Notes under the pieces: generated by a model
What the model saw: only the letters and a program-made list of their open reading frames with translations
What the model was told of the DNA's origin: nothing
The model's database searches: none
Part shown: positions 7,930 to 62,320 of the stretch, one piece after another
Layout of the letters: each line of letters begins with the position of its first letter
Numbering within the stretch: position 1 is the stretch's first letter
Assembly (NCBI GenBank): GCA_004431415.1
Contig: QPMI01000057.1
Coordinates: forward strand, 62,001 to 126,000
Direction of reading: 5' to 3'
DNA length: 64,000 nt
Origin: Cyanophora paradoxa CCMP329
Taxonomy: Eukaryota; Plantae; Glaucophyta
Translations under genes and position numbers: made by a program

Positions 7930-9504
7930 ATGGATGCGGAACGCGCGCGGCGGGAGATACGCGAGAGGCTGGCGGCGCGCGAAGCCGACATCGAAGGCCC
8001 GCATTCCCGTACTGTGCCCGGGCGCGCCGCTTCTGGTTAGTAAACTCTTAAGCGCAGCGAGGCGCGCCGAGCTTGCGGATCCTGCTTCGAGCGAAAACTT
8101 CAAGCAGCACATCAGTTCGATTTCGGGCGCTTTGAAGGGCGACGGTATGCTCTTCACACATAGCTTGACGTAGCTTTCTAGCTAGAAAGGCTAGGAATCG
8201 TTGCCCCTCTCACGCTGGATTTTCTCCCGTAGCATCGCATGCTTGCACACACAGGGAGCTGAACCTTGACTCGGAAATATGTGTCAAGACCGCCGAGGTC
8301 CTGGGCGAGCGCATCAAGGCCATTCACTCTGGCTTCAAACAGTGGACATCGAAGGATTTCGCCTCGAAGATAAAGCGGAAATATGCAGATATTGCGGCAT
8401 TGGCTGAAGAAGAGGCCGAGTTCAAGCTCAACTGGCGAAACGTGGGTCAGGTTGCACGGAAGTACTTCCGCACGACACCAGCCATGAGCTTCATGTGAGC
8501 TTGCGTACTGATTCGCAATTCTGTTGGCTGATACTGCGTTCCTCCCCAAAGGCTGGGGCCGCTAAGCCTGCAACCAAAGCAAAAGGCAATGCGGCAAAAG
8601 CACATCATTCGTGGAAAAGATGAGGCAGTCAAGGTGACAACCACGGAGCGGGTGCTCTTTCCTCCACACGTGCCACACTTTCTGCGCTTGAAAGTTCACT
8701 CTGCCGCAGATTCTCTCCTCGTCGGAGCAGAAGCAGAAGAGCGAGGCTGAACAGCGGTTATCGCACATGTCGAATGTCGTTCTCAATGAAACTAAAGCTC
8801 GAGGCAAGTTCAGCGATTCCATACAATAACCAGTAATCCTCTTGTTTGCTTAATCTTCATCGAAGGTGGTGTCAATCTGTTCGAGCTGGCAGTCAATCCG
8901 CAGTCATTTGCACAGTCGGTGGAGAACCTTTTTGACTTGTCCTTTATGGTCAACAGGTTCATTTTTCACTGTGCCAATCTCTGTGAACTGCCGTGATCGT
9001 GCTGACCAGCCAGGCAGTGGCGAGGTTGAACTGTCCTTACATCAGAACCAACCCTGGTTACGTGAGCCACTCTTTCTTTCTTAGCGGCCGCTTTCACATG
9101 GTCAGACAGAAACAAGGTATACTGCTGACAATGGTGTCAAGAAAGATGTACATGGAAACGAGATGTCAGAGGACCCCCAAGGGTCGAGGCCCCTGAATGA
9201 TCTCATCATCAAGTTTGATATGAGCATGCACGAGGTAAGTAGTTCTCATGTCTTATGTGCACTAGGGTTCATTGAACTTCATCAGGCTGTGCACTCTGCT
9301 TACAAACTCGAAAACTGTCGCCTTGGTCATCGCTCAGAGTAAGTGTTCCTGTTAATTTCTAATCTCTATTGTCGATAAAATAATAATATGGTTGGCAGCC
9401 CGAGCCTGACCAACGACGGCGGATCCATGCTCTGGGGGGAGGATGAGGCAGATGAAACTGGATATGAACCTGGACACGATGGCCACGAAGATGAAGGAAG
9501 CTGA
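7930..9504 (+). CDS. NSE4: NSE4/EID3-family kleisin subunit of the SMC5/6 complex, multi-exon
   Basis: Exon at ~8866-8957 encodes NLFELAVNPQSFAQSVENLFDLSFMV, the Nse4 C-terminal winged-helix signature. Upstream NWRNVGQVARKYFRTTPAMSF..GPL resembles the Nse3-binding region. Last exon ends ...GHEDEGS* (TGA 9502-9504). Confidence 0.8.
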
Positions 9505-9522
9505 TCGCATATCTACAGATTA

Positions 9523-10244
9523 GCATTTGGACACGATGGCCACAAAGACGAAGGAAGCTGATCGCATATTTCAGATTAGAAGTTCGGGCTACAAGTGTGG
9601 GATGTACACTGCGGCCACCACGACTGTGGGCCCAGCCCACCAGCGAATTGGCCGGCCGGGCCATGCATTGCCCCCTGAGGGGAGTAATGCGCCTCCCCGC
9701 GGACACTTTAGCCAGCTAGCTATAGCTACAGGTGCCCGCACGGTGGGTGCAGCATTGCGTCTTGTGATGGCAGGGGTCGTCCCGGGGTGGTGGCAAAGCT
9801 GCTTTCCGACTTCGAGCTTCATGCCATGCATCCCTTGCGCAAGGCCGGGGAGGCCTCATTCCTTCCCCTTACTAAGTAAGGGCCCTTATATGAGTCACTG
9901 ACCAGTAACCCAGTCACTGAGTGGTTAGCTGTGATCATGACCGGGACTGCTTGGCCCAGTGGATTCCTCCTGTGACCGGGCGTGTCTTATCCATACTCTT
10001 CCTCTTCTTCTTCTTCAGAATTTAATTTCGAATTCACAACTAGCCGACCTCGATTTGGACAGGTTAGCAGCAGGGGCATTCCTCCTCTGCGCAGCGATTG
10101 CCTTTCGTTTCCGAGTGTTCAATTGCCTAGTTCTAGATTAAGTTCTTTCGATTGCCTACGCAGCTGAGAGCTCTCTCGACCGTGTACACTTCTAGTCTTG
10201 GCTAGTTCAGACACCACATATCATAGTATATCGGGTCAGAATGC
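9523..10244 (+). mobile_element. Dispersed non-coding element (family A/B), apparently full-length copy
   Basis: Left end GCATTTGGACACG, core GGGCTACAAGTGTGGGATGTACACTGCGGCC...GGGCCCAGCCCACCAGCG, right part TTGCCTACGCAGCTGAG...GGGTCAGAATGC. Shared with more than 10 other loci in the window. Confidence 0.75.
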
Positions 10245-10613
10245 ACTCAGGCACCCGAGCCGGCGCTGCCTCATGATCAACCTCTAAGCTTAATTATAAG
10301 TCTAGCGTTTTTCGCAAACAAGCGTGGCACCCAAGCCGGTGCTGCCTCATCTCGCGTTTTTTGCCACAGTGCCAGATCTTGATTGGCCATATGCATGCAT
10401 GCGCACTGCGGCATATGCATATGGACTTTGTCTTGGGCCGTGGACAGTCTTGATTTTGGCGCAGTTTTGATTATGGAGGCGTGGCGCCGGCCAACCAAAC
10501 CAAAGGGCATTTGAGCTCTGAGCTCTCCGAACCGATTGGAGCTCCGGAGGCTTTGGAGCTCGATTGGGCCAGACTCGTTCTTTCGATTCAATGATTGCCT
10601 ACGCAGCTCGTTC

Positions 10614-10862
10614 TTTGGACACGTACTCAAAACGCAGGTGCGGGCTACAAGTGTGGGAATGTACACTGCGCATGCGGCCGCCGCGGCCGCGGGCCCAGCC
10701 TGGCAGCCCACCAGCAAGCTGGCCGGCCGGGCCCTGCGTGGCCCCCTAAGGAGAGTAATGCACAAGCCGGGCCCTGCGTGGCCCTAAAAGGCTGGCCAGG
10801 CCCTGCGTGGCCCCCTATTAGTCTCGGCAAGTTCAGACACCAGGTATGTCGGGTCAAAATGC
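10614..10862 (+). mobile_element. Family A/B element, internally deleted copy with both ends
   Basis: TTTGGACACGTACTCAAAACGCAGGTGCGGGCTACAAGTGTGGG ... TTCAGACACCAGGTATGTCGGGTCAAAATGC. Confidence 0.75.
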
Positions 10863-11009
10863 ACTCAGATCCTTTGGACAAAAAGAAGGCCTGCAGTAAT
10901 AGGCCTAGGGCCGCATCTCGAACAGCTAAAAATCCTTGAAGGGGGCCGCAATCGACTTTCAATCTATCTCGCATCAATTTACACGGTAGATAGACTGTGG
11001 AGTCTGACT

Positions 11010-12846
11010 CTAGTGGATTTGTTTGCTGTGGAGTTCGGTCCGATACTTCTCTGGCACACCAAGGTTAGCGAGCTCCTCCAGCTTCTTCTGCTTGATGCGT
11101 TCCAGCTTACTCCTTTCGAGGTCACGCTGAGCCCTAAGTTTATTGCCCTCCTCCAGGAACTCTTGCCTTTCCCGCCTACGCCTCTCTTCTCTCTCAGCGA
11201 TTTGGGTCTGTCCCGAAAATATCAACAAACAGCGAACGAAAAAGGACACCAAAAGACTGACCCGGAGAGCATCCTTGTTCTGCAAACGTCGCCGCTGCGC
11301 CTCTGTCTCTCGATGCTCTTCATCGGCTCTGTCAGCTGCTTGAACTTTGAGGATTCTCTCGAATTCCTCTCGCTGAGCTCTTGCCTCCTCAGCCAGCCTC
11401 TGTTCCTTCTCCAATCGCTGCGCCTGACGCGCTTCCGCCATCTCCGCTTGCATTCGAAGCTCTCTTTCTCTGTCCTCACGCTCCTTTCGCCGCCACTCCC
11501 GCTCCTTCTCTTCAATAGCGCGCTTCGCGCGGAGCGCATCTTCCTCTGCGCGAGTGTCCTGCGCCTTCTCCTGCATAGCCCGCAATCTCGCAACCTGGGA
11601 AACTGTGATGAGCACGGGTCGGTGGACATTTCATCAGGAAATCAAAATTCGAACCTCCCTCTCCTTCTCTGCACGCTTACGCTCCTCCTCTTCGGTCCTT
11701 TCCATCTCCTTTTTGTCCTTCTTCGCCAAATACTGTGCTATTCGCTTCTCCTCCTCTTTCTCTTGCTGTGCAAGGATTGCCTTCCGGCGAATTTGCTCTG
11801 CGTTCGCCGTAGCTACTTCTTCCAGGAGACGGCGGCCTTCCTCGCGCTGCTGGATCATCTTCTCCTTCTCGTCCTTCTTCAGCTGCTCAATGTTCGAAAG
11901 AATTTGCTGCCGCTCGATCTCCTGTAGCTCGAGCTGCTCTCGCTTTTTAGACGCAGGCGAGTCTAATCAGAAGATCTGTGAATGAATGCACCTGGTGTAG
12001 GCGCTCGCGCTCGCGCTCCGCGATTTGCTGGCGAATTACCTCCGCCCCTCGCCGCTGCTTCTCGGCTCGCTCAACTTCGCGCTCCTCATACATGCGAAGC
12101 GCCTTTAGGCGCTCAATTTCCATGATCCTGTCCAGGCGACTGTTCTCGACCTCTCGCTCCGAGGAGACGAGTTTCTGAGAGTTGGTTCAGCGGAGCAGCA
12201 CAATCGCTGTTGACGCAGAGGCACCTTCTCCTCGAGCTGGGCGTCGCGAATGGTGACACACTTCGCATACAGCATCATCTGGTTCATGTGCTTGACGTCG
12301 TCGAGCTCCTCGTCAAGCTGCGCTTGCGCTTTTCCGAGCTGAGCGGAAGTTAGCTACAGACATGAGCGGAAGCGGGATGCTGCGCTGACCAAGCTACTGG
12401 CCTCCTGCATCTGCTCCTTCTCGACATCTGAGGGCGGCGCGCTCTTCTTGGTCTCCTCTGCCAGCTTGAGCATACGTTCCTTTCTGAGCTTGCTCTCCAG
12501 CATGTGCTTCTCCTTCTCCTCTTCCACTTGCTTCTTCATAGCTAGCTCCTCCTCACGAGTCAGGACTCTGGCCATGCTCTGCGCAGCGCTCAGCGACTGC
12601 GACGAGCCAGGGCCCAGGACAGAACCGGACCTTGATTCTGCCGAGCTCCCGAGTGGACAGAATCGTCGCCTCCTCAGCGGCGCGATGCGTGCGCTTTGAA
12701 GTCTGAGCTGCTGACGGGCCCTCGGGAGGCAAAAGCGGCATGGTGTTGATCTTCCTGCTGCTGCCGAAGAGAGTCTCGTCGACGCTGTTCTTGGTGCCCC
12801 GCAGGCGTGCCGACGCCACGGGTGGTGTCTGCCTGCCGGCCGGCAT
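11010..12846 (-). CDS. CFAP45: Cilia- and flagella-associated protein 45 (CCDC19), multi-exon coiled coil
   Basis: QLDEELDDVKHMNQMMLYAKCVTIRDAQLEEK, AEEDALRAKRAIEEKEREWRRKE, C-terminal KKLEELANLGVPEKY; N-terminal SVDETLFG. Confidence 0.88.
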
Positions 12847-15513: not shown

Positions 15514-16993
15514 GGTTGTTTTGATTAGGGAAATTTGGGTGTGGCTCGTCATGCTTTGGTGAGCACGCCTGAACGTATTGAGGGTGGAATTGTCGCATGC
15601 ACTCCAACTAGGATGTGTCCTTTGCAATCCACTTGGGGCCACTAGTCAGACTTGGGTACCTTAGTTGCTTGCAACTAAGGACCCAACGTTGACCCTTGCA
15701 AACGCACAATCGTGTTTTCCGGGCAATCCAGCGACCGCGCCGGCATGTTTCCTTGCAGCAAAGCGCATCCGCTTTATAAGCTAGCGCGAGGGCAGGTAGA
15801 CTGGTTGCCAAGATCGCAAGGTTCCCATACAAACATGCAATCGCCTCCTGCTCCTCAGGGAGCGCGCGCGCGGTTCCGGTTTTCAAACCAGTTACAGGGT
15901 GCATCGAAGCGGGCAAGATGGCATGCTCAGCAGCATGGCGTTAAGGTGCGAGCCATTCTTGGAGCTGGCCGTAGCCGTCACCAGGGAACATGTACCCCAA
16001 AGTCGGCTCTATAAGTTCCGAACTTCGGAATTCGAAAAGCTTGCAAACAGAGATAGGCGCACAGTGCGCACTCACGCAACCGTGCTCTCTGAAACCCAAG
16101 TCTGTACTGCCCCCCGGGGGCAGGAATAGTTATTATACAAGCGAGTCCCTGCGGAGTAGGAGTGGCCTTAAGCTTGGGTCTTGGGGTTTCAAGACGTGAG
16201 GGTGGCTGCTCTTTGTTTTAAAACGGGGTCCCGCAACCGCGCGCGGTTACTGTTGAGAGGACTATGCCGCCTATATATATAGCTAGAATCTTCTAGCTTG
16301 GTCTAGCTAGCGCCAGCGATAGCTATAGCTATGTAGTAGCGGCGCCTGCTGGCGCCGGCGGCGCGCCTATAGCTAGGCCTGGCGCGGCCGGCGCGCGCCG
16401 GCGTCCGACGGTCGCGGCGATCGATCGCGATCACGTGACTCACGTCGGCGCCGGAGCGATAGCGCTAGCGCTCGATCGATCGTTGATCGCGATCGTTTAT
16501 TTGCGAAGCGCCGCGCGGCGATTCTGCCGGCGAAGCGCCTAGTACTAGTGACTCCAGCCTTCCACTGGCCAGCCGGGTACAGAGGCTCTTTGCAATTTCC
16601 ATCGGCGAAGGGCCGGGAAGCAAGCTGGAACCAATGACAATCGCGCTTGTCCGTGAATGGGTGAATTGACTTTTTGTGCCAATGGCGATCGGGCTTAACG
16701 CGAACAATTTCGTTCGTACGTGCTGTTAGTGCTTGTTAGAGGTGTCACATTTGAAAAGTAGCTCCGCCATCGTGCTCCCTAGGGTCGAAAATGGGTACCT
16801 AGGTCTAAAAATTTTGTCTATAAAATCAAGTTGAAGTTTGCCACAAGCTAAGATAGGCACAGACCTAAGGGCCTCTCCTTTCCCCAAGGCCGATATCTGC
16901 GGCCTTGCGCGGCAGAACACTCCCAAAATACCTCCCATCTTGGAGTGGAACCGGCAGTCCTCGCTGTCTGCCTAACGTACCCCGCGACGAACC

Positions 16994-18213
16994 ATGTCGA
17001 AGCCTCGCGTCTTCTTCGGTACGTGCCCGCCACTGTTCGCGTATGTCACCGATACCCTCCCGCAGATATGACGATCGGCGGGGCGCCGGCGGGCCGCATT
17101 GGTGCGCCGGGAAGTTTATCATTCACCGCGGCGGCGGCGAGTAATTCCGCTTAACGATCGACATCTTACTTCGTGATTCTCGATTGCAGTGATGGAGCTT
17201 CGCGCGGACGTCGTCGTGCGTCGCGCCTATCGCCTGCGCGTCATCTGCTGCTAACGAGCGATGTGTCGCCGCGCAGCCCAAGACGGCCGAAGTTCGAGGC
17301 CTGACCTTTTGAAGTCCTAGCCGTTCATTCACGCGCCTCGCAGAACTTCCGTGCTCTGTGCACTGGCGAGAAGGGTGCGCTTGCTGCCCTGTTGCTGCGC
17401 CCCCCGTTAAACATGCGCATTCAGGCTTTGGCTTCAAGGGGTCCATCTTCCACCGGTCCGTCCCGCGAGTGGCGCGTTTTTGCACTCGTCTGAAATTCCG
17501 CGCAGTGTCATTCCGGATGTAAGCGCTTTCTGCGGTGCCCAGTCTTTCTCGCTGACGCTTGCGCTTCCGTGTTTGTGTCGTTCGGCCACAGTTCATGTGC
17601 CAGGTGTGCCTATCCCGTTCAAGCATCGAGTGTCTTTTCTCAACTTAATCCGAACACCGGCAGGGTGGCGATTTCACTAACCACAACGGTGATTGCTCTG
17701 CAATAGATTTCTTTCTTCCTGTTTTCTCAAGGGCAGTGCGATCGTCTCCCGTTCTTGGCCTCCAGGCACCGGCGGCAAGGTCAGTTTGCTCTCGTTTTTC
17801 CTCTTCGACTTGCCAGTACTTACGTGTTGCAGTCGATCTACGGGGCCAAGTTTGCGGACGAAAAGTGCGCATGGAGATCTGTCCCCGTTCTCTGATCCTT
17901 TGCCGTGCACGAATCTTCCCCACAGCTTCACCCTCAAGCACACTGGTCCCGGCATCCTGTCTATGGCGAATGCTGGTGCATCTATGTACTCATGCTCCGT
18001 TCGCACTTGCATGCTTAATTCTTCCCAGGTCCGAACACGAACGGCAGCCAGTTCTTCATTTGCACCGCGAAGACGGCTTGGCTCGATGGCAAGCACGTGG
18101 TGTTCGGCTCTGTTGTCGAGGGCATGGACGTCGTCAAGGCGTGCGAGGCTGTTGGCTCGCAGTCCGGCAAGACCGCGAAGGAGGTCAAGGTGGCCGACTG
18201 TGGCCAGCTGTAG
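16994..18213 (+). CDS. Cyclophilin A-type peptidyl-prolyl isomerase, copy 1 (13 exons)
   Basis: Splicing 12 GT-AG introns gives [130 protein letters not shown]...VADCGQL*. Confidence 0.96.
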
Positions 18214-18577
18214 AGAGGATGTGCTTTGTGGCCAGCTGTAGGCACAGTTGTGCTCTTATTGTAAATGTGACTCTGTGCACGTGTGAAGGCACAGTGTTTT
18301 GTTCGGAATCTGCTGTCACAGTGTAGCGAAGCAAGATTGCGATCTCATGGCCCTGCGGCACACTGTTTTGATCCAACGAAGCCCTGCTTGTCCCATTTTA
18401 TCTCCATCATGAATTCATGTTGGATTGGAGCTGTGTTTGTGGCGTTCGGTCGCACTGTGACAGTTCATATAGCCACAGCACATTCCAAACAAAACACTGT
18501 GCCTTCACACGTGCACAGAGTCACATTTACAATAAGAGCACAACTGTGCCTACAGCTGGCCACAAAGCACATCCTCT

Positions 18578-19797
18578 CTACAGCTGGCCACAGTCGGCAA
18601 CCTTGACCTCCTTCGCGGTCTTGCCGGACTGCGAGCCAACAGCCTCGCACGCCTTGACGACGTCCATGCCCTCGACAACAGAGCCGAACACCACGTGCTT
18701 GCCATCGAGCCAAGCCGTCTTCGCGGTGCAAATGAAGAACTGGCTGCCGTTCGTGTTCGGACCTGGGAAGAATTAAGCATGCAAGTGCGAACGGAGCATG
18801 AGTACATAGATGCACCAGCATTCGCCATAGACAGGATGCCGGGACCAGTGTGCTTGAGGGTGAAGCTGTGGGGAAGATTCGTGCACGGCAAAGGATCAGA
18901 GAACGGGGACAGATCTCCATGCGCACTTTTCGTCCGCGAACTTGGCCCCGTAGATCGACTGCAACACGTAAGTACTGGCAAGTCGAAGAGGAAAAACGAG
19001 AGCAAACTGACCTTGCCGCCGGTGCCTGGAGGCCAAGAACGGGAGACGATCGCACTGCCCTTGAGAAAACAGGAAGAAAGAAATCTATTGCAGAGCAATC
19101 ACCGTTGTGGTTAGTGAAATCGCCACCCTGCCGGTGTTCGGATTAAGTTGAGAAAAGACACTCGATGCTTGAACGGGATAGGCACACCTGGCACATGAAC
19201 TGTGGCCGAACGACACAAACACGGAAGCGCAAGCGTCAGCGAGAAAGACTGGGCACCGCAGAAAGCGCTTACATCCGGAATGACACTGCGCGGAATTTCA
19301 GACGAGTGCAAAAACGCGCCACTCGCGGGACGGACCGGTGGAAGATGGACCCCTTGAAGCCAAAGCCTGAATGCGCATGTTTAACGGGGGGCGCAGCAAC
19401 AGGGCAGCAAGCGCACCCTTCTCGCCAGTGCACAGAGCACGGAAGTTCTGCGAGGCGCGTGAATGAACGGCTAGGACTTCAAAAGGTCAGGCCTCGAACT
19501 TCGGCCGTCTTGGGCTGCGCGGCGACACATCGCTCGTTAGCAGCAGATGACGCGCAGGCGATAGGCGCGACGCACGACGACGTCCGCGCGAAGCTCCATC
19601 ACTGCAATCGAGAATCACGAAGTAAGATGTCGATCGTTAAGCGGAATTACTCGCCGCCGCCGCGGTGAATGATAAACTTCCCGGCGCACCAATGCGGCCC
19701 GCCGGCGCCCCGCCGATCGTCATATCTGCGGGAGGGTATCGGTGACATACGCGAACAGTGGCGGGCACGTACCGAAGAAGACGCGAGGCTTCGACAT
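18578..19797 (-). CDS. Cyclophilin A-type PPIase, copy 2 (inverted duplicate)
   Basis: Reverse-complement copy of 16994-18213. The two coding differences I found are synonymous (TTT/TTC Phe, GTG/GTT Val). Confidence 0.95.
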
Positions 19798-20439
19798 GGT
19801 TCGTCGCGGGGTACGTTAGGCAGACAGCGAGGACTGCCGGTTCCACTCCAAGATGGGAGGTATTTTAGGAGTGTTCTGCCGCGCGGGGCCGCAGACTAGT
19901 TGCCCCAATTGCAAGTGGATTGCAAAGGACACATCCTAGTACCTTTAACTGAACGATATCATGTGCACGCGTACGTGGACTGATCATGACCGGTACCATG
20001 CAGTGTTTGGCCATATGCATGGTGGTTCAATTGCAAAACTTAAAGTATCTATAAGAGATATACGTATATATACGTACACGTATACGTACGCGGGCACAAG
20101 TGACATTGAACCAGCGCTAGCTTGACAAGGGTAGTGACGTCGACGGTGCAAACGCCTATACAGTCTACACGTGCACAGCATGCATGCATATGCAGGCCTA
20201 GGGCCGGGCCCAGTGACGGCATGCAGCACGCATGCGCAGTGGAAGTCCCACACTTGGAAAAACAAAATCGTAGCTACCGCTATAGCCTGGGTGTTCAAAG
20301 GTTGCGACCTGAATTCTTGTCCAAATGCCTAATTCTTGCCCGGCTCCAAGTGCTAGGAATTCAATGATTGCTTAGTTCAAGGCGTTCAGTGATCATTTCA
20401 CACTGGCATGCTTAATTTTACACTGGCTCCAAAAGTGTG

Positions 20440-22303
20440 TTAGGCGAGAGGAGCATTTTTTCTCAGGCGAGAGGCCTTGTCTTTTGGTGCTGAAACCAGG
20501 TCCTGGCGAAAAAAAGGTTCTTTTGGATGAAATGGCGAAAAATCACAGAATAAAGCAACGCCACCTTGAATGATCTGTCTTTCTCTGTGTGGTCTCCTTC
20601 CCCCATTCTTGCTTTTTTTATCCTTCTTCTCTTGTTTGTTATTTCTCCATGTTCATCAGATTCTCCTGCAGTTGCATCTTTCCTTCTCTTCTTTTGCACT
20701 TGATCTTGGCCTGCATCGATATCGGATCCATCTACTTCTTCCTGTTTACTCTGTGCAATTGCTTTTTGCATTTCTCGCCATTCATCCTGTCTCCTGGAAA
20801 TTTTCAATGTTAAGAGAAATCACATGATGTGCCATTTTCCGTACCGTTGCCACTCATTCTTTGCCTTTTCCGCTTTAAGTTGCAGCCGATTAACGACGTC
20901 TTCGAGAGAAAAGGTTTCTCCACTGTGGGACAGTGGTTAAAATCGGTATCGAATCGCTAGGCCGAAGGAAGAAACGGACCCCGGAATGATCTTTCTCAAC
21001 CGCTTGAAACGGCTCTGTGCTTGCCAGTTTTTCCTGGATGGAATCGTTCGCCACAAGAGCAAGATTGGCACGAACATTGCACAAACCACTTCGGTCCGAA
21101 ACCATGCCAATTCAGATCAGCCTCCTCTTCTGCACCACTGGTGAGCTGGGCTTGCATCCTGTGAAACAGATCATTCCAGATGCTAGAAACAGAAAGTTGA
21201 ATGGACACGTCGCACACTTTTCCAGGAGGTCAATGTCATCTTGCAGTGTCCATTCCATCTGCACGCTGTGTTTTGAAGGATCCAAGACAGCATACCTAAG
21301 CAGCTGTTAGGGTGCAAGTTGCAGAAAGTACGAATACTGCCTGCCATTGCTTGCGACATTGTGTACGGTCTCTGATCCCGCCCATCTGCTCACTAGTTAG
21401 GTGCACTTCATTTTCGTCTGTTGAGGTACCTGGTCTGCAATTGCATTCCACGAGATCCCAGCGTGATCATGCGAAGCGCCCAGACCGTGGTCTTCGCATC
21501 CTTGATTTGAAGACAACGCTCTTAGTTGCAGAGCCTAGACGACGTGAGCAGGAATTCTGATCCGAGTCTATCATCGAGTGGCATGGCGTGCCTGTTCGAC
21601 CAAACCCCGCAACAGCTGTTTCTCGTCGACTGACCATGGTCCTAAACAAAGAGGGTATAAGCAGTGTAAATGCGTAGTTCTCGAAACAGCGTACCAGCAC
21701 GCCTTGTGAATGCGTATTGCTCGTCACGCCACTTATCCCGGACGAGCTCAGGGTGCCTTCCCAACAAGTTGCCAATCCTTCTCCACTCGGGACCATGCTC
21801 AATTATGAGCCTGTTCTCTTGAATGAGTCGAGTACAAGATACGAAGTAGCATGTCTTTGTTACCTGCGCAGTGTTGCACACTCATCTGGAGTCCACTGTC
21901 CCTTTCGGGCGTCGTGCATAACAATCCTTCCAACATGGTCATAGCAGGCCTGGACGCTGCGATCCGGACATACTCGTGCTGCAACATCGATCTCAATTAA
22001 GACCAAAGGAAAGTGATTCGTCTGCCCTCACCAACTTCGACCCAGTCGATGGCAACACGATTCCTGCGTTTCCCAGGTTCGCGCCCCAATCTCAGAACCT
22101 CGTATGCCTGTGATAAGTCGTATCCATGCTCCTGCGCAAAATTCGGATCGACAGACAAGCGTTCAACGCATGTGCCGCACCAGCAGGTGCTGATCCAGCG
22201 CCTCCTTCAGCGCGGAAGACTCACTATTTGAGAATCGCTGTGTCTTTTTGGTGGGGTGATCTCCGCTCGCCGTCAGCTTCAGCCGCGATTGACTCAGCTT
22301 CAT
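20440..22303 (-). CDS. Multi-repeat Myb protein, Reb1/TTF1/DMTF1-like
   Basis: PDRSVQACYDHVGRIVMHDARKGQWTPDE, LIIEHGPEWRRIGNLLGRHPELVRDKWRD, RDRTQCRKQW, EWTLQDDIDLLEK..GAEEEADLNW. Both termini are uncertain. Confidence 0.68.
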
Positions 22304-22553
22304 TGCCGCGAGGTGCCGGAGCGACACAGTTGATCCAGCTCAGACCGCCTCTGAGCGCTCGCAGGCGCTGCCGCCCAGTGGTGTAGCTTGCACCGCTTGC
22401 GATACCTGGCCGGCTGGTGCCCGCTACCCCTTGGTTCGGCTGCCGCTCACCTGAGCGGTAGGGGAGGAAATTTTGGAAGCTCGAAAGCGGAAGAGGAAGC
22501 GTGAGGAAAGCAGCGTTCAAGTTTGCAGTTTGCGATTTGCCGCAGTGTGCGTG

Positions 22554-22737
22554 CTCTTTCTACGCTACGGGCGCGCCGGACCTCCTACCTACAGCGCTTT
22601 AACTGTACCCGTGCTGTTTGGGTGAGAGCGTAACCCGCAGGGACTGGTGCCCTGATGGGGAAAAGGGGATGGGAGCCTAGCTAGCTACGAGCCGAGCAGG
22701 CGCTTCGCGTCCACGCCCGTGCCGTAGCGGATGAAGA
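22554..22737. repeat. Family E repeat (~184 bp), copy 1
   Basis: Near-identical to 52246-52428 (CTCTTTCTACGCTACGGG...CCGTAGCGGATGAAG). Confidence 0.9.
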
Positions 22738-31380: not shown

Positions 31381-31413
<33 letters not shown>

Positions 31414-51075: not shown

Positions 51076-52245
51076 CTAGCTGATCGTGATAGCCTGCCAA
51101 TCAGCGATTTCGATGCGATGATTAACCAGAATAGAACCTGAAAAACAGGCTTTGCCAGGATAAGCCTAGGGCATGCGACTGTGATCAAACTGATCAGACT
51201 GGCAGCTGCAGCCTCGACTGTGAGTATATTACTGTGGCGGGCTGTGATATGGATTTGGTGATCACAAGCATTGGCCCTCCGATTGCAAGCCTTGAGTTGG
51301 AATTATTTTGGAAGGCTCTGATCTCAATTGCAAGCTGTCCTCAGCCGCAGCCCTGGCAAGGCTGTGATCTGGATTTCGAATTCAGGGGAGAGCTTGATTT
51401 CGGGGCTGTGATTTGGATCTCAAGGGAACTTGGGAACCTCAATTTCGACTGCTAAGGCTAGGCTAGAGCAAGAGCCTGGCGTGGACCGTGATGCTGCTGT
51501 CAATGACACGCAAGAAACACCTGCCCTTCCCCGCCCCTAATTATAACCTGCAATCCCACGTCAATGTCAATGGTGCAATCCAGAGCGGCGATGCCAGAAA
51601 TGGCTCTTACCGCGTATAAAAAGTTTGTTTTGGAGAAGGCGGTGCAACAGAGCATGCTCGATGTCGTCTCGAACGACCTGAAGGACTACATCTGCGACGA
51701 TGTTTTCACAATCATTGAATTGAACAGTCAAGCGATGACATGCTTAAAATCTTCGAGGCCGGGAAGGATTTCGAGTTCCAGGCGCAGTTGACTCTCTTAG
51801 CTCAGTAATCTCAATTGCGTTCAGCGTGCGTACTACGCCTGTCGACGTCTGGCCATGGGCTACGCCTGTGTACTACGAAGAGGTTAGAGTAAATCACATG
51901 CTTCAGTACGTGTCCAAATGCGCATTCTCTCATATATATATATATATATAGCCTTCCGCTCAGTGCTGCCTATCTTTGCGCTGGGCAAACTTTCAGTTGA
52001 AAATTTTCTTGCAAACTTTGAGTTAATTTTCATCCCCGCGCGGCCCTCCATCTCAATTGCAGGCTAGCGCTCAATCTCGCTAGTGCTTGATCTAGATCTC
52101 TCGAGCTCGCCCGGCGGCCTGCAGCTGGCTACTTGTGCTAGCTCGAGGGAAACTTTGATTTCTGGCGGGCCCGGGTGGCCACTAGCTGGGCCAGACTGTG
52201 TTTTTGGTTTTGAGGCATATATATAGGCGGCGGTTGCAATTGTTG

Positions 52246-52428
52246 CTCTTTCTACGCTACGGGCGCGCCGGACCTCCTACCTACAGCGCTTTAACTGTAC
52301 CCGTGCTGTTAGGGATAGAGCGTAACCCGCAGGGACTGGTGCCCTGATGGGGAAAAGGGGATGGGAGCCTAGCTAGCTACGAGCCGAGCAGGCGCTTCGC
52401 GTCCACGCCCGTGCCGTAGCGGATGAAG
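52246..52428. repeat. Family E repeat, copy 2; followed by a block matching 23150-23200 and by TAATCG minisatellite units
   Basis: Near-identical to 22554-22737. Confidence 0.9.
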
Positions 52429-52979
52429 GATAATAATAAGCTTGCCAAGTTGCAATTGAGACCTCAACCAACTTTTTTTGGCAAGTTGGACGAAAGTTGA
52501 ACGTTAACGAAAGTTGAACGTCGTAATCGCAACGTTAACTTAGCAACTCTGATTCCGATCGTAATCGCAACGTTAACTTAGTAACTCTGATTCCGGTCGT
52601 AATCGCAACTCTGATTCCGATCGTTTGGCCTTCACGTCCTTGTCGTCCACTCCCCGCGCGCGCTTTAGCTTCTTCTCCAGCTTCGCCAGCTTCTTATCTG
52701 CCAGGCATAGGCTTCGGCGCTCAGCGAGGGGACAGGTTCGCGATTACGAACATTGCGATTACGAACATTGCGATTACGATTACGATTAGGCCCTGCAGCT
52801 GAGGGGCTGGACCCGATTACGATCAGGCCAAATCACTATTATGCCCGCTTGGCTTCACCTCAAACGTGCACCTCAAACTTGTAGTCCCGGCGGGTTGTGA
52901 TTTGGATTCGGAAACTTGTAGCGCCGGCGGGTTGTGATTTGGATTCCAGTGCCACGGTGGCGCCGGCGGGTTGTGATTG

Positions 52980-53166
52980 GACATCTGATCTTTTATCTTA
53001 AGCCAAGCAGAGCACTTCGAATTCGATTTCCATTTGCGTATGCAACTGAGCCCAGGCGAGACCATGAACTGTGCCGTGGCGTTGTCCGGCCTCGCAATCG
53101 CTGACCGGACCCTACCTAACTCAGAAACAGCTATAGCCAGATACCGCGATTGTCATGTCAAAATAC
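52980..53166 (+). mobile_element. Family A/B element right end overlapping the stop codon of the qRRM gene
   Basis: CAACTGAGCCCAGGCGAGACCATGAACTGTGCCGTGGC...AGCCAGATACCGCGATTGTCATGTCAAAATAC. Confidence 0.85.
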
Positions 53167-54564
53167 AACCGTCACGGTGATCGGGGTGCCGCCTTCATAA
53201 AACGGGAGGAAACTTTTCTCCCGCACTGCTCTTGCCACCTTACCACCAGGTTAATTTCTGTGACACAAAGGGGGGGAAAGACACACCTCTTCCCTTGATG
53301 CGAGGGTGACAAGGGCTGTCTTAGTGCGGAAAGGACCCCAGCCTGACCCTGCCTTCGCAGCACTTCCAGCAAGCAGGGGAGGTTTGAAAGGGGATACAAT
53401 CTATACAATCAATAATGTTAGCTCTGGTATACAAGAGACATAGCATAGAAAGCAGGATGCAAACCGAGATGCCGTCAGCTGGAACCTTGTAACCACGGAA
53501 GAAATCCCGTACTTCACTGGGCGTGGCTCTTTCTGGAAGATTGGCGACCTATGCATGAGCGAATAAGGGAAGTTCGGATCTGCAGAACTGGGGCGATTGC
53601 TGCAGCGCTCGCGGCGCACGACAACAGTGAGGCCCGGCTGCTGCATGCGCTTCTTTGGGAGCATATCGAGAACCTCGGCCAGGATGCGCTGCACGGCGAG
53701 TCCGGCATCAGCGTCAGAAGTCAACTGGGCATTTGCGCGCGCACGACATCAGGCCGGACAGAGAGAAGACCAATGTCGCGCGCCGGTGCGAGCTTCGCGC
53801 GAGCCTCGTGCGCTGCCGCGTTGTTGATGAAGCGCGCGTACCACATGTGCGTCGGCTGATAATCGCTTCCTGGCACCGCGTGCACGCTTGTCGGCTCCGC
53901 TCCCACCTGCGCGCCCCCTCCTCCTTGGCGAGGCCTGCTACGGCAAGGCGTTCGGGCCGCACCTGGCGAAAGAAGTGTAGGATGTCCTCGGGCACGGCTG
54001 TGAGCGGCACGTTATACAAGAGAATGACCCGCTCCTCGGACGCCTTCCGCGCAGTCAGCTCGCCGCGCATCGTGCGCTGAACGGCACCGCACCGCCCGCT
54101 CTGTTCTCGTGTCGCGTTCGGATAGCTCCCGGCGCGCCATGAGCTCCTTCAGCATTGGATCGATCCGTGCTGCGCCTTTGCGGGCAGTCACTGGCAACTG
54201 CCCCCGGCTTTTGTCCGCTCGGATCGGTATCTTCGGCTGCGGCGCCTCGGTCCGGACAGCTGCATTCGCTGGCGGCTGCTCTGGGACGCTGGCAGCCTCC
54301 TCTGCGGCCGTGTGACGGGGCACCCAAGCGCAAGCGCACGCGCAGGCCGAATACCTGTTGTTCGGGGATCGCGTTCCGCTCCCTCCGCATCTGCGGCCGC
54401 AACTCGGGCACCGCTCATCGCAGCGCGATGAGGGACGTACCGGTTGGTTGAGGATGCGAGTTCGATCCTGTACTAAACCACCTCGCGCTGCTTCGCGCGC
54501 GCGATGCAAGCTCCGTCGTAGCGCTACCGCTCTTGGCCGCTCGTGCAGCAATCCGCCGGAGCAT
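53158..54564 (-). CDS. Probable mitochondrial RNA-binding protein with two RRM/qRRM-like domains
   Basis: Presequence-like MLRRIAARAAKSG...ARWFST; ILLYNVPLTAVPEDILHFF; VANLPERATPSEVRDFFRGYKV...TALVTLASREE|VARAVREKSFLPFYEGGTPITVTVVF*. Confidence 0.72.
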
Positions 54565-57017: not shown

Positions 57018-57459
57018 ACCCATCCTTCGCAAAAGTGCTCTTCGCTAGTTGGGTACTTGGGGTCTTGTCAGTTACTCTTCCATAGCTAGACATGACTATA
57101 GCCTAGTAGCTAGCTATGGTGCTGGAACCCGGCCACGCCTGGCCCGGGCCCTCGGGGGGTCAAACAGAGCACTGCCAGCTCACCAGGCGATACGCCTGAG
57201 AGATTAGGCCCTCAGGGGCGACGATTAGGGAGGGCCTGGCGAGGAGCAGCTACGCTGGATGGAAGGGGGACTCCGGGAATTCGAAGTGCTAGCATGCAAG
57301 GCTGGCAATCGAACTAGAACTCAATCGCAAGATCCGGGGTTGCCAAAGTTGGAGCTCGCGATCGAGAGGGCCTCCGGGCTTCACAAGCGTACTGGCCATG
57401 GGGGCTGTGATTTTAGAGGCCTAGTGCTGGATTTTCAAGTTTTTTGGACTAGTCCTTGA

Positions 57460-57650
57460 TTTGCGGACCGCAGTACTAAAAACGCAAGGGCGGCCGATCC
57501 TGGCTACAAGTGTGGGCGACCCCACGACCGCCGCGACCCCGCGGTCGGGCCCACTGGGCCAGCCCGCTCCCCTTTTCGAACTGACCCCTTTTCGCCCCCC
57601 CAGCCCGGCGCAAGCTGACTCCATGTCGGGCCCCCAGGGCCTGTAGCAAT
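57460..57650. mobile_element. Diverged or rearranged family A/B fragments
   Basis: GTACTAAAAACGCAAG...GGCTACAAGTGTGGG on +, and GCTGACTCCATGTCGGGCCCCCAGGGCC as the interior on -. Confidence 0.6.
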
Positions 57651-57919
57651 AAATTTTCGTGCAGCCTCGGGTCGGGAGGGAGGGGGTAAAAGTTCGCGTT
57701 CTAGAAAGGTTTCGCCCCCCCTTGGCCAATTCCGCAATAGGGTTGTCGTTCTTGCACAATCGGCCAATAGGATTTCGAGGCCCCAAAGAATCCATCCCCC
57801 CTCCCCCCCCCTATACCGCCACAGAATTAGAAGTGTGAAAAGTAGAACCTCGGGTCGTTACCCTCGCTCTGCTCACTGAGTCAGGTCGACCCGAGGCTGA
57901 TAAACTTGAAAATAGGAGC

Positions 57920-58173
57920 TTCCGCCACCGCTCCGAGCTGGAGACGACCCCCGCCGCCAAAAGACGTGATATCGATGCCGCACCCACCGTGTGGGCACAT
58001 GTAGCTATTTAGCTAGCCAGAGTGTCCATGGGAAAATGCATTACTCCCCTCAGGGGGCCACGCAGGGCCCGGCCGGCCAGTTCGCTGGTGGGCTGGGCCC
58101 GCGGCCACGGCGGCCGCAGTGTACATCCCACACTTGTAGCCCGGACTTGCGTTTTTAGTACGTGTCCAAATGC
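57920..58173 (-). mobile_element. Family A/B element, left end 19 nt after the GPN3 stop
   Basis: Minus strand reads GCATTTGGACACGTACTAAAAACGCAAGTCCGGGCTACAAGTGTGGGATGTACACTGCGGCC...GCGGTGGCGGAAG. Confidence 0.85.
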
Positions 58174-58192: not shown

Positions 58193-59323
58193 TTAAGGGT
58201 TGGGCGTGTATTCTGTTTCTTGATCGATTTCGGATTCACGTGCTTCGCGAGTCTCAGCATCCTCTCCGTACTGGATGGCGTTGTCGATCTCCACGAGAAG
58301 GTTAGCGAGCCCGTCTTCATCACTGTAATCCAGCGGCACAAACTGAACCATGCTGTAATCCTCCATCTGGATACCATTGGAATTGGCTGAGGACTCGAGC
58401 TGGGGAACGCACGAGAGAGGCCACAGCAGAGTTGAGAGCGCGAAATCGATCGCCGGTCTGATTCGTGAGTTCCTCTACGAGAGCAGGCACATCGGGATCG
58501 AGGTAGCTTTCAATTCGCTTTTTCAACTTCTTCGGCAAGAGGTCCATCTTCGTGACGACATTGACGTGAGGCAGGGCAAGTCCCACCTACATATCACTTA
58601 ATGCTCGCGTATATGGAGGCGCGAGGTGGGGCGGGCCATGGCGGAGAGACACATAGTGGAGCCGGCGATGAACTTGGCGGCATCGGAGAGAAAGTGCGAA
58701 TCGAGAAGGCACACCGCGCACACGTTAAAACCCCACCTCTGAAGGTTTTCTGCCAGGCTCCGCATTACCGGAAGATGGCTGTACAGCTCGATCTGCCCTG
58801 CGGCAGGATGTCGGTGCCGGCTGCAGCGAACGCAGGAGAGCATGCGCCGCACCAGGGCAATCGAAGACGAGGTAATCGTCATCCAGATACTCGTCCACCT
58901 GTTCCTTGAACCAGTCAATGTTCTCCAGCAAGTACCTGGCCTGCCCGTCAGCCTGCGCGCCCCGGCAGTCTTCGCGGCTCACTCCATGCAGTACACGAGA
59001 CCGCCGTTTGGGCCGTAGCCAAGCTCGGACATGACGTCGTCCAGGCTAATGAGGTCCCGTATGTCTGCGGAGGCGAGTCGCGCGGCGCCTCGCGCGGCAT
59101 TGCCTCGCGCTGGCGCACCGAATGCGACGGGATAACTGAAGTTCTCGGCCGCCGGGTCGAGGTTGACGATATGCACTGTCCGTCGCACATTCTCACAATG
59201 CGTCCGCAGCTGGTCACAGTACGTGGACTGCGGTGCGCTAGTGAGCGCTTGCAGCACAGCCGCAACGACTCGACACACCTTGCCAGACCCTGCAGGGCCG
59301 ATGACAAGTTGTGCATGACGCAT
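58193..59323 (-). CDS. GPN3: GPN-loop GTPase 3, multi-exon
   Basis: [15 protein letters not shown]|[66 protein letters not shown]. Confidence 0.95.
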
Positions 59324-59618: not shown

Positions 59619-61976
59619 ATGTCGCGGCGCGCGGCGCTCCCGCCGTCCGTGCTGGCGCCACCGGTTATCTCGCCGATTGCTCCTCCTCCAAATCCGCCAA
59701 AAGTTCGCCTCAGGTTTAGCTCTGCTAATCAAGCTTCCCACTGTTGACCCTGCGTGCCCAGGAGCGGAAGCCTTATACGATCACCAAGCAGCGCGAGAAC
59801 TGGACGGAAGAGGAGCATCAAAAGTTTCTCGAAGCGCTCAAGCTGTGCGCCCCGCTCGCTGCCGCCCTCCGGATCTTTGTTTCGATGATGACATGGCCGA
59901 CCAGATACGAGCGCGACTGGAAGAAGATAGAGAACTACATAGGGACCAAGAGCGTCGTTCAAGTGCGCTCGTCGTTTTCCTCGCCGCTAGGCGTGCTGCG
60001 CGGGTCACTGACCTCCGCGCTGTAGATCCGCAGCCATGCCCAGAAGTTCTTCCTCAAGGTGCAGAAAAACGGCACCGGCGAACATGTGCCTCCCCCGCGG
60101 CCGAAACGGAAGTCCGCGCAACCCTACCCACAGAAGACTGGTCGGAAAGCGCTCAGCGCCTCAATCAGCCTTATGAGCTCACGTGTGCGGCAGGCCAGCC
60201 TCAGCTCACAGATCAACAGCGACTCGCTCAGGAGCAGGCTGAGCAGGAACAGCTGGTACAGGCGCAAAAGCTTCTGAATGACGTGCGCCAACAGCGGCTT
60301 GCGACCCTCACCACTTCGCTGACTTGCCCCGCCCAGTACATGACCGCCGCATCTGCCCAAACGGCGCAAGCGACTGGCGAGCCTGTCCGAGGTGCGATTC
60401 GGCGCCCACACTGCGGTAAAGCATAGCCGTCCGATGCGCGCCCCGTACACAGGACCGGACTTCCACCGCATCTACGCATTTTTGGGGTCGCTTTTCGATC
60501 CAAGCCAGAGTATGCAGGTACGGCCAGTGACGCGCATCGAGATTCTTGAGCGCTAAGCTGCCGCGGGTAGGACGTCGTGGGAGCTTTGCAAGGGATGTCG
60601 ATGGTCGATCGCGAGACAGCGCATGTGCTGATGCACAATCTCTCTGTAAATCTCTCTAACGACCAGGCGGGCTACATTCCCGGCGCCGCTTGTGTTTGGC
60701 TGCCCAGCTGACGAGCCGTAGATCCGGCACAACGTGGTAGCGCACCTCTCCTTCCATCAACAGACCATCGCAATGAACCAGCAGATTCTTGCTGTATGTC
60801 CTGCCCGACTCTCGCCGCTCCGTTCACCCACCCTTTGCCGCAGGGCCAGCCCGTCACCATCAACCCCAGCGTTGTTCCTCAGAGCACTCATTCTGCCATG
60901 TCTTCCGCCGCAGCCCCTTCCTCATCCTCCTCAGCCCCGCCTCCCCCCGCCCCTCCGTCTGTAATGGGCCCGCCCCCGCCTCCCGGCGCGGCACCTTCCG
61001 CTGTTTCCGGCGCTACCCCGACGGTCGTCCAATTAAGCCCCGCTGCCGCATCCGCCACGGCACGCCCAGGAGCTGTCACGACTAGTGCGCCGCAAGCCTG
61101 CCGCGCCCGTCTGCATGTTCCCTGAACGCCCCTCGCGCAGTACCAGCCCAAATACGATCGGTGCAGGTGCCGCCAGCGCCGGTCGGTGTGTTGCCGCCCC
61201 CCTCCCCCGCTCCCCCGGGAAAAAATGCCGCCGAGCCGCTTACGGGCACCGCAGCTGGACGCTCTGTCGGCCCGCCCGCAGCGATGACAGTCGTTGCCGC
61301 GGGCCGCGGTGGACCTCCTGCCGTGGCCGCTCGGACCGGTCCGGCGGGGGCCCCTCTCGCATCAGGGGCTCCGTTGCAAGTTCCTACCGCCGCGCATGCA
61401 GGGGCACACGTGCCAAGCGTCCATCCGTCGGGCCCTCAGCCTCCAGGCGCCCATCCCCTGCAGCCGGCTGCCCCGCCCGGGGCGCAGCCGGCCCCCCCGG
61501 GTGCCCACATCGCTGCGGGCCCGTCGAGGCCCGTCGCCACCAGTGGAGCCGTTCTCGTGCGGCCCCCTGGGCATTCCCCTCCCGTCCCTGGCGCGGCTAT
61601 CGCCCCACTCGCCGCCCCGCCCGCCTCTCAAACGCCTGCTCCGGGTGGCGTTGGTCAGGCGCGCCCGGGCGCTTCTCTCGGGCCTCCGGTTCCAACGGCG
61701 CCAGCCATGCTCTCCTCCCCAGGGGCCTCCACCGTGCCCGTGGCCCCCACTGGTCCTCCTCCGCCTGCCCCTCCTTCTGTTCAGCCTGTGCCTTCCGCGG
61801 CGCTGGCGTCAACACTAATGCTGGCGGCGGTCAAGCCGGAGGCGGCAGTTGCGGTCAAGGTAGAACCCGGAGCGGGCTCGCAGGCGGAAGTACCCGTCGT
61901 AGGTGCCATTCCCCAAGCTGGCGCTGTCGTGATTGCTGGAGCCGTCGCCATCAAGCCCGAGCCGCCTGCCGCATAG
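59619..61976 (+). CDS. REVEILLE8/LCL-type single-Myb (SHAQKF) transcription factor with a Pro/Ala-rich tail
   Basis: [27 protein letters not shown]|[19 protein letters not shown]|[29 protein letters not shown], and LCL-like [16 protein letters not shown]...[20 protein letters not shown]. Confidence 0.9.
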
Positions 61977-62166
61977 CTGTTGTTTGGCCCCGTTGCATCT
62001 TTGTTTCAGAGAGGCTTTCTCATCGCAGATCCTTCATTTCAATGCGCTTACTTGAAAGAATTTCCAATTCGTGTCCAAATAGTCAATGTACAGTGATCAT
62101 GAACGTACAATCTCGAGACCACACATGCATGCAGCGACAACCCAAGCACTGGAGGCAGCTGCGCGT

Positions 62167-62320
62167 GCATTTTGACGTGACAGTTGCGGTATCTGGCTAG
62201 CTGTTCTTGCATGGCTAACTAGCTATATGTGGGGTCCGATGGTCCACCGTCACCGTGGCACGGCGTGGCACGGTACGGTCATGAATTGCGAGGCCGGGAA
62301 CGCCCCAGCACAGTTCAACT
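62167..62320 (-). mobile_element. Family A/B element right end, downstream of the RVE-like gene
   Basis: GCATTTTGACGTGACAGTTGCGGTATCTGGCTAGCTGTTCT is the reverse complement of the 35186 end. Confidence 0.7.

Follow-up and report, generated by a model that had tools for sequence, protein, structure and literature searches.

In trypanosomatids such as Leishmania, the short, degenerate, non-autonomous retroposons SIDER1 and SIDER2 are found mostly in 3' UTRs, across many unrelated genes, and have been co-opted into roles in mRNA fate. Plant MITEs (Tourist/Stowaway) have terminal inverted repeats (TIRs) and duplicate a TA or TAA target; they often occur in 3' flanks and sometimes donate poly(A) signals. 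To our knowledge, no fixed stop-codon spacing has been reported for SIDERs, and we know of no fixed distance to the stop for plant MITEs. Ty1/Ty3 and Dictyostelium TRE target Pol III genes, and Tf1 targets Pol II promoters. Stringent-type LINEs, for example UnaL2/UnaSINE1, form SINE/LINE pairs with a common 3' tail, and introner elements, described from Micromonas and Aureococcus, are located in coding regions and provide splice sites. The safe-harbour targeting known to us is directed at Pol III genes, promoters, heterochromatin, rDNA and telomeres, not at gene 3' ends; we know of no system that targets the 3' UTR start of Pol II genes.

We analyzed 64 kb of the glaucophyte alga Cyanophora paradoxa CCMP329 (contig QPMI01000057.1, positions 62,001 to 126,000), here called the window and numbered from its first base. 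In a motif search of the window, the left-end motif gave 7 matches at ≤2 mismatches versus 0.08 expected, and the right-end motif 5 matches versus 0.42 expected. BLAST and nhmmer recovered about 18 ends, belonging to about 14 copies or fragments (Table 1), in line with the initial annotation, which had described at least 12 dispersed copies of one non-coding family with conserved end motifs. The multi-copy units in the window are 20-290 bp long and non-coding, with no ORF of note; no coding capacity was found in any L or R copy there. They are 76-90% identical to one another, and judged by this identity the family is old. Many lie away from gene ends, in both orientations, and about 13 ends are found elsewhere in intergenic DNA. 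The summed DNA k-mer depth of the L end in contigs is 60-70× the single-copy level, a figure that is not a copy number. No convincing outside relatives of L and R were found, no empty site appeared among the contigs of the DNA run, and no library searched gave a family with these ends; the initial annotation had likewise recognized none.

Table 1. Copies, fragments and ends of the L and R units in the window, with their positions relative to neighboring genes
Feature	Coordinates	Strand	Context
L copy	9523-9794	+	Docked 18 nt after putative NSE4 stop (TGA 9502-9504); first 13 nt, then 44-nt duplicate of NSE4's own last bases (9536-9579)
R' variant end (...GGGTCAGAATGCAC)	10128-10250	-	Points right; head-to-head with L copy at 9523
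L copy, degenerate end (TCTTTGGAC)	10610-10800	+	Nested within R' copy (10566-10600 plus 10801-10868)
R' end	10801-10868	-	Faces CFAP45 stop (11010-11012), 145 nt off
Variant-subfamily end (...TTGTCCAAATG)	20270-20328	-	Faces Myb/'RVE'-like gene stop (20463-20465), 135 nt off
L copy, far side truncated	23765-23937	-	End points right, ~210 nt downstream of AP1G stop
L copy, far side truncated	24008-24129	+	Sense to AP1G; truncated side begins 0-17 nt after AP1G stop (24147-24149)
Full-length L copy, ~290 bp	30140-30431	-	CATTTGG immediately adjoins TMCO1 stop TAA (30431-30433)
Far-side L fragment without conserved end	32105-32209	+	
Full-length R copy, ~210 bp	32337-32546	-	Docked 17 nt after ADA2 stop TAG (32562-32564)
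Full-length R copy	34990-35187	-	Docked 17 nt after HSBP1 stop TAA (35204-35206)
Short composite	46588-46743	+	L end (46588-46688) and R-like end (...ATCAAAATGCAT, 46727-46743) pointing outward; (GA)n run immediately outside L end
Degenerate R end (GTCACGTCAAGCGC)	46940-46978	-	~68 nt from probable DXS stop (47046-47048)
L-end stub, 20 nt	51901-51921	-	
R copy (r53)	52960-53166	-	End overlaps candidate stops of putative qRRM gene; far-end segment present as three tandem copies
Diverged L arm	57444-57647	+	Head-to-head with L copy at 58173; includes shared far-end segment 57614-57647
L copy	57913-58173	-	Docked 19 nt after GPN3 stop TAA (58193-58195); unrelated 238-bp element with 13-bp perfect inverted repeat (57662-57899) nested in far part
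L-type end stub (GTGTCCAAATA)	62061-62082	-	Faces R end at 62165 over 82 bp
R copy, end pointing left	62165-62340	+	Opposite orientation

These copies give little support to the first proposal, in which left and right ends belong to one TIR element. L and R are mostly separate units of about 290 bp and 210 bp, each with a discrete far end common to its full-length copies. Their bodies show no mutual similarity, and the only sequence they have in common is the end motif GCATTT(G/T)GAC. In the sense of the host gene, this end reads (CTGAG / YTGT)GCATTT(G/T)GAC, and in that of the element ...GTC(C/A)AAATGC, after which comes a short CT-rich tail. The conserved end probably reaches 3-5 nt further out (CTGAG / YTGTG), in which case the spacings given below would shrink to about 11-15 nt. 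The full-length L copy (30140-30431) has no terminal inverted repeat. R carries a subterminal inverted repeat (14/18 in copy 52960-53166), its far-side arm lying about 12-17 nt inside the shared boundary, and in four composites or pairs L and R-type ends point outward from each other. Truncation of L and R copies in the window is mostly on the side distal to the conserved end: six truncated L copies (20-190 nt) retain that end, and one fragment (32105-32209) is without it. The gene-proximal 130-170 nt are the best-conserved part of both modules; R has a conserved block 85-140 nt from its end.

Of the approximately 18 ends, 5 face a gene from a position -1 to 19 nt behind its stop codon, versus 0.05-0.3 expected in the 64-kb window (P<2e-5). 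The previously claimed excess of stop-codon hits over random insertion thus holds even under generous assumptions. The distances from stop to GCATTT are also as first read (NSE4, 18 nt; ADA2 and HSBP1, 17 nt; GPN3, 19 nt), with the TMCO1 TAA adjoining CATTT. All but one of these five spacings are 17-19 nt, within a 3-nt window (P ~0.001-0.03; post hoc, the reference base having been picked after viewing the data). Ends are about 25-fold denser in the first 20 nt after stops than in the remaining non-coding DNA, no end was seen 20-65 nt behind a stop in the window, and a family member lies within 20 nt of the stop in at least 6 of the approximately 10 genes checked there. The spacers between stop and element show no relation from one docked copy to the next, which places the stop codon outside the element. 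The ends further out, at 135 nt (Myb/'RVE') and 145 nt (CFAP45), are confirmed, and the degenerate end near DXS is present, its position corrected to about 68 nt from the probable stop. The gene-facing terminus had been described as typically intact; at all five docked copies the conserved end faces the gene, and the one polarity exception is the AP1G L piece (24008-24129), whose conserved end is directed away. Within this window, the ends are clustered position-specifically near a host landmark beyond chance.

Such a pattern might also come from chance or from mis-called stop codons. The NSE4 and qRRM stops are putative, and the base to which distances were measured was a post hoc choice; three stops, however, are fixed by spliced RNA-run contigs and one by homology. 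The ADA2 TAG (32562-64) ends a reading frame that stays open for 418 codons across 8 RNA-supported introns, spliced RNA contigs back the TMCO1 (TAA 30431-33) and HSBP1 (TAA 35204-06) stops, and the GPN3 TAA (58193-95) comes after the conserved GPN3 C-terminal motif. With an excess at P<2e-5 under generous assumptions, this reading is already close to refuted.

The published assembly had no predicted UTRs (PMC6704402). In RNA contigs, we observed that the TMCO1 mRNA extends at least 57 nt into L, down to 30374. ADA2 mRNA contigs extend 100-143 nt into R and end at 32443-32446, with one at 32403; over the next 350 nt there is no RNA contig, though DNA contigs cover them. A high-depth HSBP1 contig extends 97 nt into R, to 35090, and depth then drops 10-40 fold (~35090-35119). 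The apparent end of the ADA2 message and the HSBP1 drop thus fall about 70-145 nt inside R, over its best-conserved block. At contig level, these data support that the elements lie within the mature mRNA behind the stop for TMCO1, ADA2 and HSBP1, the element's first 100-170 nt forming the 3' UTR. The suggestion that the element end now supplies the 3' UTR and poly(A) signal gains support at the same level for these three genes, with the cleavage site placed by inference because contigs break at repeats and poly(A) sites are not visible in them.

As to element class, the evidence tips slightly towards a SINE-like retroposon rather than a MITE. The SINE-type combination of a constant conserved end with variable truncation of the other side is present, and in several copies short CT-rich stretches follow ...AAATG (CTCTCTC at 46588, CTC at five others). 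Comparing the flanks of 4 composites and 16 single copies, we found no convincing target-site duplication, and none at docked copies; the only two candidates are 9 bp long with one mismatch (the 10610 copy, and 52951-52959 with 53171-53179 around the R copy at the qRRM gene, 8/9). For a Pol III head, ARAGORN found no tRNA, and Rfam (5S, 7SL) matched neither L nor R, whether at gathering thresholds or with E relaxed to 1. The 64-kb window contains no LINE. Helitrons have 5'-TC ... CTRR-3' ends, a 3' hairpin and insertion between A and T; we rejected this class, as the ends here are ...GTCCAAATGC and ...GTCAAAATGCAC and the flanks do not follow the A|T rule.

We speculate, with a probability of about 45%, that L and R are two old, non-coding, non-autonomous mobile-element families, with nothing in common but a terminal motif of some 12 nt, and with an insertion preference just behind stop codons. 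One common insertion machinery would recognize the shared end, most likely a partner LINE's reverse transcriptase, which would prime on the sense strand of the gene, so that the element would come to lie antisense to the gene. This machinery would have a strand-specific preference for the first ~20 nt after stop codons. Insertions may be tolerated because the element carries its own 3'-end-formation region, the candidate in R being the conserved block at 85-140 nt; the part near the gene would then be kept by purifying selection and the far part left to decay. Against this reading stand the lack of a convincing target duplication, Pol III head or partner LINE in the window, the TIR-transposon-like look of the four outward-pointing end pairs and the R subterminal inverted repeat, and the opposite polarity of the AP1G copy. 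The 17-19 nt cluster, further, is four cases in 64 kb with a post hoc reference base. We know of no DNA-level means of measuring distance from a stop codon.

A possible alternative, which we hold at clearly worse than even odds, needs no targeting: insertion could occur anywhere, with fixation or persistence only between the stop and the native poly(A) signal, in the orientation giving a working 3' end, and with other insertions slightly harmful or soon deleted in a compact genome and a large population. In the native 3' UTRs of CFAP45 and the Myb-like gene, GTGTAAA follows the stop by only 27 and 41 nt, so the slot before this putative signal would be short and any tolerated insertion would look docked. 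The better conservation of gene-proximal than distal parts, the age of the family (76-90% identity), the ~13 ends elsewhere in intergenic DNA and the mRNAs that, at contig level, end inside R all fit retention, and a population-level fixation bias could yield the same excess at stops. The ~25-fold end density, however, would require nearly all other intergenic sites to be worse than the first 3' UTR bases. Sites just past native cleavage should be at least as harmless, yet the stretch 20-65 nt behind stops holds no end. With spacings spread uniformly over a 0-40 nt slot, a cluster of four out of five within 3 nt has a P of only ~0.004-0.03, and the 17-19 nt cluster leans towards targeting over retention. 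We consider it improbable that the units spread without transposition, as 3' UTR cassettes copied between gene ends by ectopic recombination, gene conversion or templated break repair. The lack of target-site duplications would fit this, as would the NSE4 and 10610 ends, which join duplicated local sequence via 3-8 nt microhomologies, like the filler DNA of template-switching repair; but many copies lie away from gene ends in both orientations, the flanks of docked copies have no common homology to drive conversion, and the 60-70× L-end depth fits a dispersed high-copy repeat.

Should the bias already be present at insertion, it would be a new class of genomic safe-harbour targeting and the first transposable-element system aimed at the 3' UTR start; one would then have to ask which DNA or chromatin feature singles out the bases immediately after a stop. 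If only retention acts, much of the 3' UTR and 3'-end-formation sequence of this glaucophyte would still be built from a few repeat families. Repeat-built 3' UTRs bear on gene annotation, small-RNA regulation and expression-cassette design. A further reading, to which we give clearly less than even odds, is that several unrelated non-autonomous families of this alga share one motif because they use one machinery, with strand-specific placement within about 20 nt behind the stops of Pol II genes, each insertion replacing the 3' UTR with a portable one.

Set against the described systems, L and R are, like SIDER1/SIDER2, short, degenerate, non-autonomous and located in the 3' UTRs of unrelated genes. 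SIDER host genes, however, are polycistronic and trans-spliced, whereas L and R start 0-19 nt after the stop, are mostly antisense and seem to hold the mRNA 3' end. With plant MITEs they share small size, lack of coding sequence and gene association, but no regular duplication was found for L and R, their ends are mostly single, and truncation is one-sided. As in the UnaL2/UnaSINE1 pair, unrelated bodies share only the last ~12 nt and truncation affects the other side, although no Pol III-type head, partner LINE, clear tail or target duplication was found for L and R. Insertions that accumulate within a narrow range of a gene landmark and obey orientation rules recall Ty1/Ty3, TRE and Tf1; the landmark here would instead be the 3' UTR start of Pol II genes, and L and R are non-autonomous, with no integrase, endonuclease or tether found for them. 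Like introners, they are non-autonomous and would be tolerated within transcription units through RNA-processing signals of their own, but what they would bring is a 3'-end region, placed behind the stop codon.

The initial annotation had described one element family with a left and a right end. Both end motifs are real: in the window the expected counts are 0.08 for the left-end motif (up to two mismatches), 0.42 for the right-end motif and 5.4 for the minimal common word TCMAAATR, and the observed counts are 7, 5 and 19. Using self-BLAST, alignments and nhmmer profiles, we recognized some 14 copies or fragments in the window, which together have about 18 ends. A single element with two ends is not well supported; the family is better described as two non-coding units, L (about 290 bp) and R (about 210 bp), which share the conserved end GCATTT(G/T)GAC in gene sense, agree only in about the last 12 nt, and have unrelated bodies.

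Copies of L have a common far boundary, and three copies of R have one in common (see the table). Six L copies are cut down to 20-190 nt and all six keep the conserved end; one further L fragment lacks it. CTGAG precedes GCATTT in several ends of L and of R', a variant of R, while YTGT precedes it in R. Among loose ends of further genomic and transcript copies, subfamilies diverge in the last 30 nt and carry the same terminal word, and a short CT-rich stretch often stands behind ...AAATG(C) in element sense. No coding capacity was found in L or R, nor any special RNA structure in gene sense (folding z-scores −0.14 for R and +0.18 for L). The L copy behind GPN3 contains in its far part an unrelated nested element of 238 bp, whose 13-bp terminal inverted repeat, CAGCCTCGGGTCG, is perfect; the L copy behind TMCO1 is the empty site for this element. 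Satellite arrays of the GATTACGATTACG type adjoin two family copies, and the far-end segment of one R copy is present in three tandem copies.

Coordinates of repeat units, stop codons and other features in the window
Feature	Coordinates	Remark
L copy	30140-30431	common far boundary
L copy	57614-57647 plus 57913-58173	common far boundary
L fragment	32105-32209	common far boundary
R copy r53	52960-53166 (-)	
Nested element	57662-57899	
GATTACGATTACG-type satellite arrays	29223-29900; 52740-52816	
R far-end segment	52877-52985	
Composites with outward-pointing ends	9523-10250; 10610-10868; 46588-46743; 57444-58173	
NSE4 duplication	9471-9579	
TMCO1 stop	30431-33	TAA
ADA2 stop	32562-64	TAG
HSBP1 stop	35204-06	TAA
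CFAP45 stop	11010-12	
Myb-type gene stop	20463-65	
AP1G stop	24147-49	
DXS stop	47046-48	probable
SLU7 stop	57015-17	TGA
GTGCTCTTCGC behind SLU7	57018-57052	
GTGTAAA behind CFAP45	10985-10979	minus strand
GTGTAAA behind Myb-type gene	20424-20418	minus strand
Inverted repeat	16896-18316; 18475-19895	
Duplicated non-coding stretch	22552-23201; 52244-52484	
Five tandem repeats in ORF	43739-45262	
Poly-G/poly-C tracts	348-405; 1215-1292; 31372-31412; 39303-39350; 39604-39650	25-35 nt

At the spacings first annotated, the conserved end of R begins 17 nt past the stop codons of ADA2 and HSBP1, and that of L begins 19 nt past the GPN3 stop, 18 nt past the putative NSE4 stop and directly at the TMCO1 stop. 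About 18 ends in 64 kb entered the docking study. When the expectation is computed from 18 ends together with 7-25 stops, five gene-facing ends at −1 to 19 nt past a stop were observed against 0.05-0.3 expected (P<2e-5), and we give very little credence to the docking pattern being an artefact. Of the five spacings, four lie in a 3-nt window; the probability of this is about 0.03 over a range of 0-19 nt and about 0.001 over 0-60 nt, in a test that is post hoc and depends on which base is taken as reference. The conserved end apparently continues outward for another 3-5 nt, which would bring the spacings to about 11-15 nt. Since the spacers between stop and element are mutually unrelated, the stop codon lies outside the repeat, and we ruled out stop plus spacer as part of the element. 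A 43-codon ORF closing 19 nt before the end at 57444 was rejected as a gene end, because SLU7 is the real neighbour and has its stop codon 427 nt upstream. Behind SLU7, GTGCTCTTCGC begins 17 nt past the stop; it resembles the docked ends and has no second copy in the window.

For the stop codons, contigs of three RNA-type runs and one DNA run were aligned to 30100-35400. Segments of 46-111 nt with CT..AC borders (GT..AG on the minus strand) are skipped by the RNA runs and kept in the DNA run, indicating that the three RNA-type runs are transcript assemblies. The RNA-supported introns in the window are of the GT-AG type and 46-111 nt long, in agreement with the dense, intron-rich genes and short introns of the published Cyanophora paradoxa genome (PMC6704402). 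Reading frames were followed through the introns by exon arithmetic: ADA2 has 418 open codons with RNA-supported introns up to its TAG, and in TMCO1 and HSBP1 the final exon stays open to the TAA. The GPN3 stop follows a C-terminal region with a 10-residue motif that is conserved in comparison with human GPN3. Pfam searches of about 60 ORFs in the window confirmed CFAP45 (TPH), DXS, AP1G (adaptin), PP2A-A and SNF2, assigned the 'RVE-like' gene to the Myb type rather than to an integrase, and found no transposase, integrase or reverse transcriptase. GC3 was discarded as a coding test, as it does not discriminate in the window.

Host messages enter the elements at three genes. The TMCO1 mRNA contig extends at least 57 nt into L, where only the repeated sequence interrupts it; the DNA contig is interrupted at the same position. 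ADA2 mRNA contigs of two runs reach 100-103 nt into R and one of the third run, with mismatches, reaches 143 nt; no RNA run has a contig over 32047-32400, which the DNA run covers. At HSBP1, the high-depth contig extends 97 nt into R, and the contigs downstream are 10-40 fold lower. Conservation in both L and R is highest in the gene-proximal 130-170 nt, and in R the messages stop over a conserved block 85-140 nt from the end. Given the mRNA contigs entering the elements and the conserved block at the message ends, we conclude that the elements are the 3'UTRs of TMCO1, ADA2 and HSBP1, and that R probably holds a 3'-end-formation site. The earlier proposal that the element end supplies 3'UTR and poly(A) signal is supported for the 3'UTR at contig level; the 3'-end-formation site is deduced from contigs, which cannot show poly(A) sites. 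In one RNA run an unspliced contig, 33953-35108, links the HSBP1 3' region to ADA2, pointing to read-through from one tandem gene into the next or to ADA2 transcription that starts within the R copy or upstream of it. One of the poly-G/poly-C tracts in the window inflates RNA and DNA contig depth at 31516-31692.

We tentatively propose, with a probability of roughly 0.45, that the units were inserted in a targeted manner behind stop codons and would then have been exapted. Retention alone, that is, insertion anywhere with survival only behind stops, is a possible but somewhat doubtful explanation. A large excess can arise without any insertion bias where the population is large and insertions differ in their probability of fixation. 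In addition, GTGTAAA stands 27 nt past the CFAP45 stop and 41 nt past that of the Myb-type gene, in 3'UTRs that are free of the repeats, and is a candidate for the native poly(A) signal. UGUAA is the poly(A) signal of green algae; if Cyanophora uses it as well, little room would be left between stop and signal, and any tolerated insertion there would look docked. However, retention without insertion bias is at odds with an end density behind stops that is about 25-fold that in the rest of the non-coding DNA, with the lack of any end at 20 to 65 nt, and with the narrow spacings. An exception in polarity occurs at AP1G: 0-17 nt past its stop begins a truncated piece of L that is sense-oriented and has a fuzzy boundary. 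This hints that the constant feature is the site rather than the element's end.

As to the class of L and R, we see about an even chance that they are SINE-like retroposons. Counted against a retroposon are the subterminal inverted repeat of R, the outward-pointing end pairs in four composites, and two end pairs that face each other 71 and 82 bp apart. A MITE-like DNA element is a plausible but less favoured alternative, and a unit of neither kind is unlikely. Searches for target duplications under both a terminal-inverted-repeat and a retroposon model gave nothing convincing, and none was found at docked copies; the only candidate, 9 bp with 8/9 matching, lies exactly at both boundaries of the R copy r53, near the putative qRRM gene. 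No RNA-gene head (tRNA, 5S or 7SL-like) was found by ARAGORN or by Rfam, whether at gathering thresholds or with E allowed up to 1. The L ends at NSE4 and at 10610 are joined to duplicated local sequence by microhomologies of 3-8 nt. At NSE4, the last 53 nt of the putative gene (CDS end and spacer) are duplicated with 92% identity just within the start of the docked L copy, with the junction microhomology TGGACACG, which looks like filler DNA from template switching. Both joins look like template switching at a break, and a retroposon or a MITE could yield them; spread of the units by recombination itself we consider improbable.

Other repeats also occur in the window. An inverted repeat of 1421 nt, 100% complementary around a 158-nt spacer and with ORFs lacking a Pfam match, is a palindrome of very recent origin or else an artefact of long-read assembly. 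A pair of non-coding stretches matches at 98-100% identity apart from a 411-bp indel, which contains five copies of the 24-bp satellite TAATCGCAACCCTGATTCCGATCG; they are a recent duplication forming a filled/empty pair. Five tandem 306-nt (102-codon) repeats lie within a 755-codon ORF that has apolipoprotein/LEA-like helical repeat matches and no homologue in a large protein search.

The initial annotation recognized no described family with these ends, and we found none in Rfam or in the metagenome, viral and prokaryote collections. Exact 16-18-mers of the L core had 62 matches in metagenomes, 5 in prokaryote genomes and none in viruses; we dismissed these as chance, since none carries the element by nhmmer. 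Our literature searches turned up nothing on repeats at the ends of Cyanophora genes or on a Cyanophora poly(A) signal. To our knowledge, none of the closest known situations joins a fixed stop-proximal position to a fixed polarity: among them, the SIDER elements of Leishmania lie in 3'UTRs, plant MITEs are donors of poly(A) signals, and Ty3, Tf1 and TRE are position-specific elements.
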